64,000 nucleotides of DNA, taken from assembly GCA_943704425.1 (NCBI GenBank), contig CALSCP010002457.1, positions 38,103 through 102,102 on the forward strand, read 5' to 3'. The position numbers were made by a program, and so were the translations under genes. Under the pieces are notes generated by a model, which saw only the letters and a list, made by a program, of their open reading frames with translations, was not told where the DNA came from and searched no databases. The stretch is from Ministeria vibrans ATCC 50519 (lineage: Eukaryota > Protista > Filasterea). Below are positions 38,620 through 41,517 of this stretch, piece by piece; position 1 is the first letter of the stretch; every line of letters starts with the position of its first letter.

Positions 38620-41517
38620 TTATTCTTCAGATGGTTCGAGATCGGGAATGTCAAAGAACGAGCTATCAAACTGAGGAGAGTCTGACGGAGAAGGAGTCGC
38701 AAAGAAGGGATACGAGAGGGCGGAAGTGGAAGAGCTTGCTTGAGCGATAGCGGGAGAAGCGGGAAAGGGACGGGACTGTTGAGCATGTGACTGTGACTGC
38801 GCTAGTTGTGGCCGTTGTTGTTGTGTGGTGGAGAGTGGCTGTGCGGGCGGGGGAGGGGCGGAGGAGGAAGGCAAGGGTGCTGCATCAAGTGTAATTTGCT
38901 CCATGTTGGCAGTGAGGTCTTGTCCAAATGTGCTGCATGTGTGTGAGTGTGCGAGAAGTGGAGAGGGAGGAGGGTTAAGTGCAGTGAATCATGAAAGAGA
39001 CTGGTGCACTGACCTGTACTGGCCACCAGCAGCAGCAAGCAATTGGCAGCAGCGGCCCTGATCGGACAGAAAGGCCCAGTCGAGCGGGCTGTTGCCCAGT
39101 GCGTCGACCTGGTTCACGTCGGCACCTGCCTGTAGCAGCGCCTTGACAAACTTGGTCCAGCCAAATTCCGCACTGACGTGAAGGATGGTCAGTCCGGTCG
39201 ACGAAACGGAACCGTGTGAGGTACTGCTGTCGAGCGGTGTCAGTTGGACGCGCTATCAAAAGAATGAGGAAGGAGATAGAGAGAGAGAGAGAGAGAGAGA
39301 GAGAGAGAGAGAGAGAGAGAGAGAGAGAGAGAGAGAGAGAGAGAAATAAAGTGATAGAGAGAGAGAGAAATAAAGTGATAGAGAGAGAGAGAGAGAAAGG
39401 AGAGAGAGAGAGAGAGAGAGAGAGAAGGAGAGAGAGAGAGAGAAAGGAGAGAGAGAGAGAGAAAGGAGAGAGAGAGAGAAAGAAGGGGGAAAGAAACAAA
39501 GTAATAGAGAGAGACAAAAAGTGATAGAGAGAAACAAAGACGTGATGGAAAGAGACAAAGTGATAGAGGGTTAGAAAGTGGGAGTGAGATGAGAATGACT
39601 TTACTTGGCCAATGGTCGTGAGGGTCAAGGCACAGCGCGCAAAGAGCTTGGCCTCGACCGCACTGATCTGATCGAGAACAGCGCGCGCATCGGAGGAGCC
39701 AGCGGCCGCTGCACCATAGCGCTGGTGTTGCTCAATCTGGTGTTGTTGGTTGCGTAGGTGCAGACGCAATAAAAGTGCCGAAAGTTGCTCTTCGCCAATC
39801 TCCTCCACTTGAACGTCACTCTTGTACGTAAAAATGACCGTGTTGCACGCACTGATGAGTGCGGTGTCATTGTGGGTGCGTACAAACGCACTCACATTGA
39901 ACGGACAATCGCCAGTGCCCCCTCCACCACCATTACTGTTGCGAATGTTGTCCGGGAATGCCGGAATGCGAAACATGCAATAAGCAGTGCCATCGCTAGA
40001 CACATCCACCTGCAATTCACACAGAACAAGAGAGAGAGAGAGAGAGAGAAACAAAGTGATAGAGAGAGAAAAAGAAGTAATAGAAAGTGAGAACTTACAC
40101 ATACCCTCACACAAGCACAAAGCCGTTTACCTTTTCAAATGCCGGCACAATCTCCCCAAAAAATATACCGACCGAGTTCATGAGCTTCGCAGAGGAGCCC
40201 AAGCGTAGCACAGCAATGCACGACTCGCCCTCTTTTCCCTCATTGGGAATCAGTGCTTGAAACAAAAAATCTGCAACACAAGTTAGTCGTAAGACAGGTA
40301 GGATCATGTCGAACCTGGAGCAGTGATTAGAGTGGGGGTATCTTGGGGTGACGGAGCGTCCATGGGAACAAGCGGGCCCATCAAAGGGTTGTGAAGCAGA
40401 CTCGCCAGTTCACCGTCTGGCTCAAGTTGCCCTCCGCCCCCTATCATAAATGTGCACGTGTGAGATTATATTATGTATATATATATGTATGTATGTATGT
40501 ATGTATGTATGTATGTCTTTGTAGTGTGTGTGTTTTGTGATTGTAGTATGTCTTTGTGGTGAGTATGTTTTATGGTTTGTCTTTGTGGGGTTGGGTACCA
40601 GGAAGAAGAAGAGGGTACTGACGGGGAGAGACGGGGGGAGAGAAGCTCTCGTCGTTGGCGGCAGAGCTACCGGAAGTGATCGAGGAGGCGCGCATGCGGC
40701 GCATCTCGGAGACGTGGTCACTGATGCGAGGATTGCCAAAGCCACTGCTGATCCCTCCTCCCCCTCCTCCTCCTCCTCCACCACCACCACTACCACTACC
40801 ACTACCACCAGTAGAAGTAGCAATAGCGGTATTGTTGGTGCTGAAGAAACTGCGTGCGTGGATGGAGTCGACGGACGAAGAGCGACTTAATCGACCGGTG
40901 CTATCGCCTCCGACACTCCCAGCGCCTCCTCCACTACTCGCCCCACCAGTGAGACTACCATTACCACTCGGGACGGCGCTGCCGCTACCCAGGTCATAGG
41001 GTTGAGAGGAGGAGAGGCGACGCGAGGCGGTGCGCGAACGATGCGATGATCGCACGGCACCCCCCGTGTTACTGTTGCTTGGACCATCGCCATTTCTTAT
41101 GTCGTCACCGGCAGCGCCAACACCCGCACTTGGCGAAAGAGCGCCCACTGCAACAAGAGTGTCGTGTGTGCTGCCGGCGTGGAAGGGCGAGCCACCACTG
41201 AGCATCGACGTGCTTCCCGACTCGCTCGCCACATCGTCCGTGTCGCTGTTCCCATCAAGACCACCCGCCGCCGCTTTGCCTGCGCGTCTTCTCCGGGGCA
41301 CGCGTGGGCCATCAACAGTGATTTTGATGGCGTCCGCAACAGTCGCCACCAACGGCGGCTCCGTCAGAATGGTCACAACAAGCGTGAAGCTCTTGCCTCG
41401 GCCACTGCGCCCCACAAAGCGCAAATCGACAAAGGACGCCACTGAGTTCTCCATCAGCGCAGACGCGTTTCTCAACTCAGAGTCTTCCGTTTCGTCGTTG
41501 AACGCCCTTAAGGTTAC
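38620..41517 (-). CDS. RUNX: Runx-like transcription factor: Runt domain + IPT/TIG-like domain + ankyrin repeats (5' exon(s) lost in gap)
   Basis: Exons 41517-40599, 40440-40315, 40270-40131, 40009-39605, 39252-39014 and 38932-38620, all GT-AG and phase-compatible. Runt signature [46 protein letters not shown]. Ankyrins [41 protein letters not shown]. Confidence 0.88.
39270..39570. repeat. Intronic (GA)n microsatellite with AAAGTGATAGAGA units
   Basis: Directly visible tandem repeats. Confidence 0.9.

Follow-up and report, generated by a model that had tools for sequence, protein, structure and literature searches.

Runx proteins are textbook factors of animal development that predate the animals themselves, and discussions of where they came from have, to our knowledge, focused solely on the Runt domain. 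Animal RUNX carries, besides this DNA-binding domain, a RunxI domain (PF08504) and a C-terminal VWRPY motif, and works with the partner CBF-beta. Systems of similar overall layout to the gene considered here are described in other families. In CAMTA proteins the DNA-binding domain is followed by a long disordered spacer, a TIG domain, a helix and about two ankyrin repeats, and in Spt23/Mga2 an IPT domain is followed by two ankyrin repeats and a C-terminal transmembrane anchor. In Rel proteins the IPT domain stands directly after the DNA-binding domain and acts with it as one unit, p105/p100 bearing in addition six to seven C-terminal ankyrin repeats, and in EBF/COE the IPT domain is followed by dimerising helices. 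Here we describe a Runx gene of the filasterean Ministeria vibrans ATCC 50519, located in a 64,000-nucleotide stretch of contig CALSCP010002457.1 (the window, which always means this whole stretch), in which the Runt domain is joined within one transcript to a predicted IPT domain and two ankyrin repeats in place of the animal elements.

The protein encoded at this locus resembles animal RUNX1-3, Runt and Lozenge in its Runt domain (E 1e-30 to 1e-46) with RSGRGK and DGPRxPR sequences followed by a basic stretch. It is like CAMTA in the order of its parts, and the CAMTA1 TIG domain (2cxk) superimposes on a model of the Capsaspora counterpart with Z 9.6 and a root-mean-square deviation (rmsd) of 2.3 Å over 84 residues; it differs from CAMTA in having another DNA-binding domain, no CG-1 or IQ match (Pfam, scanned exon by exon on single-exon translations) and a TIG similarity that is undetectable with hhalign. 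With NF-kB/Rel/NFAT it shares the Ig-fold family of DNA-binding domains and an IPT domain (Rel dimerisation domains score Z 9.5-10.4), and with p105/p100 C-terminal ankyrin repeats; however, it has only two such repeats, about 290 disordered residues separate Runt from IPT, and Pfam matches neither a Rel homology domain nor a death domain in the window exons or in the orthologues described below. It is like Spt23/Mga2 in placing two ankyrin repeats after the IPT domain, yet has no SPT23_MGA2 DNA-binding domain match (Pfam) and no C-terminal transmembrane anchor, and like EBF/COE in having helices after the IPT domain, although their helix-loop-helix identity is only putative. An earlier note on this DNA, made from the letters alone, had compared the layout with p105/p100, CAMTA and Spt23/Mga2. 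The likeness to the latter two has held up, whereas the p105 analogy is not supported: the layout is closer to CAMTA or Spt23/Mga2 than to Rel because of the two ankyrin repeats and the linker of about 290 residues between Runt and IPT.

Gene structure, transcripts and the Runt domain

The Runx gene lies on the minus strand with six exons in the window that total 2142 nt (Table 1). Exon phases run 0/1/1/0/0/2 and finish in phase 0, every intron is bounded by GT..AG, and the stop codon TAA occupies 38622-38620; exon arithmetic thus agrees with the earlier proposal of six phase-compatible GT-AG exons in one frame. With two further exons on an unplaced contig, C129, the predicted protein has about 777 residues.

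Transcription of the locus was followed in public runs, at least part of the Runx stretch being contained in 20 of them from nine studies and at least half of its sampled words in 11 of the 20. Contigs from four runs (X1, X5, X6 and X10), the first three of which represent three studies, were compared with window positions 38400-42600. The runs take the form of Logan contigs, from which rare isoforms can drop out. Junctions 38932/39014, 39252/39605, 40270/40315 and 40439-40/40598-9 are spliced in contigs of X1, X5 and X6, and the 121-nt intron 40010-40130 appears as adjoining contig pieces 40007|40129, the 2-nt shift stemming from an ambiguous GT. All five junctions of the earlier gene model are therefore found in contigs, with runs from three studies. 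Record 2 of X1 (2301 nt) extends from about 38855 to 41519 across every junction and 392 nt further, thereby connecting the Runt and ankyrin exons; it is the one contig that physically covers the span from Runt codons to ankyrin exon, and contigs of X5 and X6 connect the uninterrupted Runt-containing exon with downstream exons. The earlier note had named as evidence against itself a Runt exon that terminates early, with the ankyrin exons in a separate gene. No contig of the four runs reads through to the stop at 40570 or uses a donor at 40618, within the limit that rare isoforms could be missed. In these runs the neighbour on the plus strand has its GT..AG introns removed in the opposite orientation, and the contigs are therefore read as strand-consistent spliced RNA. 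The Runx-IPT-ankyrin locus is one expressed gene with one transcript.

Of the Runt domain, the frame in the window covers no more than 76 residues, at the C-terminal end. This C-terminal half, which had been read in the frame earlier, was recovered by Pfam (Table 1) and by a profile search of the genome contigs (E 1.7e-31 at the window exon). When all 2860 contigs of the assembly (29.7 Mb) were searched in six frames for Runt, N-terminal pieces of the domain turned up only on C129 (882 bp) and on C2373. Bases 1-53 of C129 are identical (100%) to window 41695-41643 on the minus strand and adjoin an 8-N assembly gap that conceals the promoter, the ATG exon and a mini-exon of the gene. The C129 exons carry GT donors and an AG acceptor and are collinear with the orthologues (alignment A1), and the ATG exon, mini-exon and window exon follow one another contiguously along the Runt model to give a complete PF00853 domain, which places the protein in the Runt family. 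The RSGRGK loop and the DGPRxPRRRR stretch (41275-41313), read in the window translation and aligned with the orthologues, are conserved and are predicted to be DNA-contact loops. RunxI (PF08504) has no match in the Runx exons, and the frame ends in PSEE with no VWRPY, as had been noticed before; VWRPY is likewise absent from the four orthologues.

A few side observations concern the same exons and introns. The intron at 40271-40314 is a GT-AG intron of 44 nt, spliced out in contigs from all four runs, and is very short by the standards of spliceosomal introns. Single-base differences between RNA contigs and assembly occur at 38724 (A>G in X1, X5 and X10, changing Ser to Pro in the Runx tail), at 39124 (A>C, only in X5) and at 39923 (T>A, only in X10); these differences are strain polymorphisms or errors of assembly or contigs. 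Introns of unrelated genes (window 39260-39600 and 40040-40100, and L008 2540-2790 on C2373) have in common (CT)n tracts and a recurring TCACTTTGTTTCT-type unit, which together may represent a dispersed intronic minisatellite family.

Orthologues and the IPT-ankyrin module

With the IPT/helix exon as query, phmmer returned two relatives among 1.84 billion representatives, records of the organism's own genome being excluded from the libraries: a 138-residue open reading frame (ORF) fragment with 49% identity on a 1.25-kb contig of GCA_025491055.1, which also has the ankyrin exon, and Chromosphaera perkinsii Nk52_evm4s2657 (630 residues), with a full Runt domain and ankyrin repeats. Word-index searches with Chromosphaera and Capsaspora queries added Capsaspora owczarzaki CAOG_00880 (886 residues), Ichthyophonus hoferi Ihof_evm1s313 (731 residues) and Corallochytrium limacisporum Clim_evm63s172 (647 residues), for which Runt, Ank_2 and Ank are precomputed in Pfam. 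In a metagenome scan with the ankyrin exon, 62 generic ankyrin loci were found, none with AEFGW, LDWA or Runt motifs.

The window exons are collinear with all four full-length orthologues in alignment A1, and the five proteins share one order: Runt domain, linker with two basic-Ser motifs, IPT domain, helices, two ankyrin repeats and an acidic tail. The Runt domain with the basic stretch behind it, the IPT sandwich, the helices and the ankyrin pair are conserved across the family. Identity to the four orthologues is 30-41% in the IPT/helix exon, and to Capsaspora it is about 39% in the Runt-exon alignment, falling to 30% for the IPT/helix exon; these values set the window apart from all four species. 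The orthologues differ from the window protein in their intron positions, and the poly-Gly insertions are the window protein's own: the poly-Gly run of the linker is absent from all four orthologues, and a Gly loop inside the IPT domain is a window-specific run of GGN codons that is not conserved. Both linker motifs are kept in four of the five proteins.

The domain in the middle of the protein, which in Capsaspora forms one separate exon, was assigned by its predicted fold. The Capsaspora exon was modelled with AlphaFold2 (AF2) from alignment A2, which comprises the three other orthologues, the two IPT exons of the window as separate rows and the fragment of GCA_025491055.1. The model is an eight-strand sandwich with pLDDT 90.8 and pTM 0.81. 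When 48,161 PDB representatives were searched with VIA-align, the top 15 were all of IPT/TIG type (E-set), with Z 9.0-10.8 and rmsd 1.9-3.2 Å over 81-93 of 105 residues; they include NF-kB p50, p52 and p65, TonEBP, NFAT1, plexin, Met, the CAMTA1 TIG domain, EBF1 and EBF3, and also hold a bacterial alpha-amylase E-set domain and oxidase E-set domains. Generic Ig and Fn3 rows reach Z 8.4 at most. The top Foldseek match is the IPT/TIG domain of EBF1 (E 5.5e-4), the best matches being EBF1 3mqi and EBF3 3n50, and CAMTA1 TIG and the RelB/p50 dimerisation domains are close behind. By protein language model, the IPT-ANK region of Capsaspora lies nearest to TIG+Ank families, namely a fungal TIG-Ank family, SPT23/MGA2-like proteins, CAMTA and NF-kB p110. 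On this modelled fold of the Capsaspora orthologue, to which the window exons are aligned, the middle domain is of IPT/TIG type, and the IPT/TIG-like segment proposed earlier is thereby borne out.

Behind the IPT domain, an amphipathic helix and a second helix ending in LFARC form a conserved helix-loop-helix-like segment (A1); helices are predicted there in a low-confidence, single-sequence AF2 model of the Chromosphaera protein (pLDDT 35), and the segment is a possible dimerisation or capping element. The two ankyrin repeats reported before are recognised by Pfam in their exon (39252-39016; Ank_2 E 6.3e-10, Ank E 5.2e-9, Ank_4 E 4.7e-8) and are the best-conserved part of the C-terminal module, with 56-62% identity to the orthologues and the signature LHxxAEFGW ... 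LDWAFxSDQ. Pfam has no match in the tail or in the three exons between the Runt and ankyrin exons, and the translation of the tail shows no membrane-spanning hydrophobic segment; the acidic-hydrophobic patch at its end is conserved across the family (A1).

As to novelty, Runt and ankyrin domains are already tagged together automatically in four proteins of public proteomes, and the fusion is accordingly catalogued at database level (NCBI, UniProt, EukProt), which in part lowers its novelty, as the earlier note had allowed for. The IPT domain is unrecognised there, the orthologues bearing no names beyond 'hypothetical' or 'Runt domain-containing' and lacking any TIG annotation. No published description of a Runx-IPT-ankyrin architecture was found in the literature searched, which omits the likeliest source, Sebe-Pedros et al. 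2011. A further 117 Runx proteins among the matches listed, nearly all labelled as animal and the others unlabelled, have Runt with or without RunxI only, in line with the earlier statement that animal Runx lacks IPT and ankyrin domains.

Table 1. Features of the Runx gene, in window coordinates unless contig C129 is named
Feature	Position	Strand	Basis
Window exons	41517-40599, 40440-40315, 40270-40131, 40009-39605, 39252-39014, 38932-38620	-	Exon arithmetic
Runt domain, C-terminal 76 residues	41290-41517	-	Pfam PF00853 positions 53-128 of 129, E 1.1e-30
Disordered Ser/Gly-rich linker, same exon as Runt	40599-41289	-	Alignment A1
Linker motif 1, RRxxSxPY-type	40996-41043	-	Window version RRLSSSQPY; 14-3-3 mode-1-like
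Linker motif 2, EMRRxRxxS-type	40672-40710	-	RxRxxS AGC-kinase-type site
Poly-Gly (GGN)n run	40750-40809	-	Specific to window protein
Pro-rich linker exon, 126 nt	40315-40440	-	Junction 40439-40/40598-9 in X1, X5, X6; 40270/40315 in all four runs
Predicted IPT/TIG domain, N-terminal half, first three strands	40131-40270	-	Aligns with Capsaspora L010:4446-4760, 35% identity
Predicted IPT/TIG domain, C-terminal half with window-specific Gly-rich loop, ends VIFTYKSD	39815-40009	-	Alignment A2, AF2, structural matches
Conserved helix-loop-helix-like segment ending LFARC	39605-39814	-	Kept in all orthologues; shared helix LHLKNQQxQI
Two ankyrin repeats	39014-39252 (repeats 39097-39195, 39016-39096)	-	Pfam on 39252-39016
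Pro/Gln/Ser-rich tail with acidic-hydrophobic patch (38623-38658)	38620-38932	-	Translation; junction 38932/39014
8-N assembly gap; conceals promoter, ATG exon, mini-exon	41635-41642	.	C129 overlap
ATG exon on C129	439-594, 52 codons, Runt model positions 4-40		Pfam Runt E 3.7e-5
Mini-exon on C129	747-782, 12 codons, Runt positions 41-52		Contiguity with flanking Runt positions

Proposed mechanism and rival explanations

The explanation favoured here, and the one we consider reasonably probable, is that of an expressed Runx with Runt, IPT, helices and two ankyrin repeats that operates by self-association, partner docking, activation and kinase control. The Runt domain would bind Runx-type sites, and the IPT domain with the helices behind it would mediate self-association on the model of Rel, NFAT, EBF and Spt23/Mga2, an arrangement that could replace the CBF-beta partner. 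The two-repeat ankyrin unit would dock a partner protein, and the acidic tail would activate transcription. The conserved linker sites (RxxSxP, 14-3-3-like, and RxRxxS, AGC-kinase-like) would put nuclear access or activity under kinase control. In favour of this explanation is counted the enrichment of a Runx-like motif in open chromatin of Capsaspora (PMC4877666).

Several points weigh against it. The fold was predicted on the Capsaspora orthologue rather than on the window's own joined domain, and the Pfam TIG model (PF01833) finds no match at E up to 10 in the window exons or in any orthologue, the domain being unseen in the window because it is split by an intron and too diverged; the genome has 27 TIG matches, and this domain is none of them. 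An hhalign comparison of the family with the TIG domain of this genome's CAMTA gives a probability of 1%, with strands sensibly paired, and a PDB profile search with an IPT-only profile returned no match, the same search with the full alignment being dominated by Runt and DARPin matches. Homology to any particular IPT family is thus unproven, since the TIG domain is undetectable by sequence. Dimerisation, docking, phosphorylation and activation are argued from analogy and motif conservation. As for CBF-beta, the CBF_beta model (PF02312) had no match in a six-frame, exon-wise search of the fragmented 29.7-Mb assembly in which a control also matched nowhere, so that this blank is no proof of absence.

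Among the alternatives, the one that survives best holds that a CAMTA- or Spt23/Mga2-type TIG-ANK cassette was exon-shuffled onto an early holozoan Runx and serves interaction or regulation only, without a dimerisation or DNA-binding role. The long disordered spacer between DNA-binding domain and TIG in this genome's CAMTA, the separate exon that holds the IPT domain in Capsaspora and the nearness of TIG+Ank families by language model all fit such an origin, whereas the want of significant sequence similarity to the CAMTA TIG, of IQ motifs and of a membrane anchor does not. This alternative departs from the favoured explanation solely in the role given to the IPT domain, and we hold it to be unlikely.

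A more doubtful alternative takes the protein for a precursor of p105/p100 type, whose ankyrin repeats would fold back on the Runt domain and basic stretch and keep the factor inactive, the Gly run acting as a proteasome stop that releases an active Runt fragment on signalling. The order DNA-binding domain, Gly-rich region, IPT and ankyrin repeats fits superficially, there is a basic stretch after the Runt domain, and NF-kB p110 and RHD clusters are found among the language-model neighbours. In p105, however, the Gly-rich region lies between IPT and ankyrin repeats, and here it lies before the IPT domain; there are two ankyrin repeats as against six to seven in p105/p100, and neither a death domain nor a Rel homology domain. 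The poly-Gly run is a window-only (GGN)n insertion, and its absence from four orthologues rules it out as a conserved processing signal, so that the p105-style processing suggested in the earlier note is not supported and a precursor of this kind is improbable.

That the Runt exon and the IPT/ankyrin exons are two adjacent genes, with the joined contigs being chimeric or read-through products, could draw on the merely guessed RNA nature of Logan contigs and on the single contig (record 2 of X1) that reaches from Runt codons to the ankyrin exon, but is scarcely credible given introns missing at exact GT-AG borders in contigs from three studies, a neighbour spliced in the opposite sense, X5 and X6 contigs that attach the Runt-containing exon to downstream exons, and the same fusion in independent gene models of four other species, one of them in both NCBI and UniProt.

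Neighbouring genes, related genes and the history of Runx

Upstream of the Runx gene, a plus-strand neighbour (window 41721-42830) is spliced at junctions 41871/42010, 42088/42163 and 42344/42406, and its first exon with the ATG falls inside the N gap, on C129. Its contigs have a loose end at 41721 that corresponds to C129 238-267 in reverse complement; the neighbour and Runx are therefore arranged head-to-head, about 190 bp separating their start codons, in what looks like a bidirectional promoter. Word depth is higher in contigs of the neighbour than in those of Runx in three of the four runs. On the other side, a convergent plus-strand ORF (window 37706-38521, 271 codons), is rich in Lys, Asp and Glu, and about 100 bp lie between its end and the Runx stop. 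One X1 contig covers 38400-38803, and the 3' ends of the two genes therefore overlap or abut.

Besides this gene, the genome has a second Runx paralogue, divided between two contigs, with an exon of the N-terminal half at C2373:17515-17619 and the C-terminal half at C1193:181-2544, where two exons are accompanied by a 707-codon Gln-rich open frame; no IPT or ankyrin match was found in this paralogue. In both Runx genes a break in the assembly falls within the Runt domain. A classical CAMTA gene (C2753:28157-33063) encodes CG-1 (E 1e-28), about 800 residues, TIG, helix, ANK and IQ-like repeats, and has the only CG-1 match in the genome, which makes it a useful comparator from within. About 60 of its residues form a poly-Gln run, and one of its introns, rich in A and T, is listed as a poly-Ile/Leu ORF. 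A 4352-codon open frame at C2792:53840-60169 on the minus strand, with TIG domains in a tandem array of 12 or more (best E 1e-16), suggests a giant extracellular IPT-repeat protein.

The layout of Runt, IPT, helices, two ankyrin repeats and acidic tail is ancient in Holozoa, since it is found in ichthyosporeans, a pluriformean, a filasterean and the organism studied here, and, as judged from these sequences, it was most parsimoniously present in the holozoan ancestor. The animal Runx may descend either from this type, the module having been lost, or from the paralogue that lacks it. A tentative scenario, which we put forward as possible but not as the likelier course of events, is that the ancestral holozoan Runx consisted of a DNA-binding domain, an IPT dimerisation domain and ankyrin repeats (compare Rel/NFAT, CSL, EBF, CAMTA and Spt23), and that the animal Runx was derived from it when, on the animal stem, the IPT-ANK module was lost and its place taken by heterodimerisation with CBF-beta and recruitment of Groucho. 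If this is true, the domain loss would be dated to the animal stem, and the two phospho-motifs of the linker would represent a signalling input to Runx from before the animals.

The module also points to a diverged IPT family that the Pfam TIG model misses. Capsaspora is transfectable (PMC6001378). Corallochytrium is transfectable as well, which makes the model directly testable. What the locus would offer in this way is a testable picture of Runx before CBF-beta and Groucho, as a factor that may have relied on self-association and kinase control.

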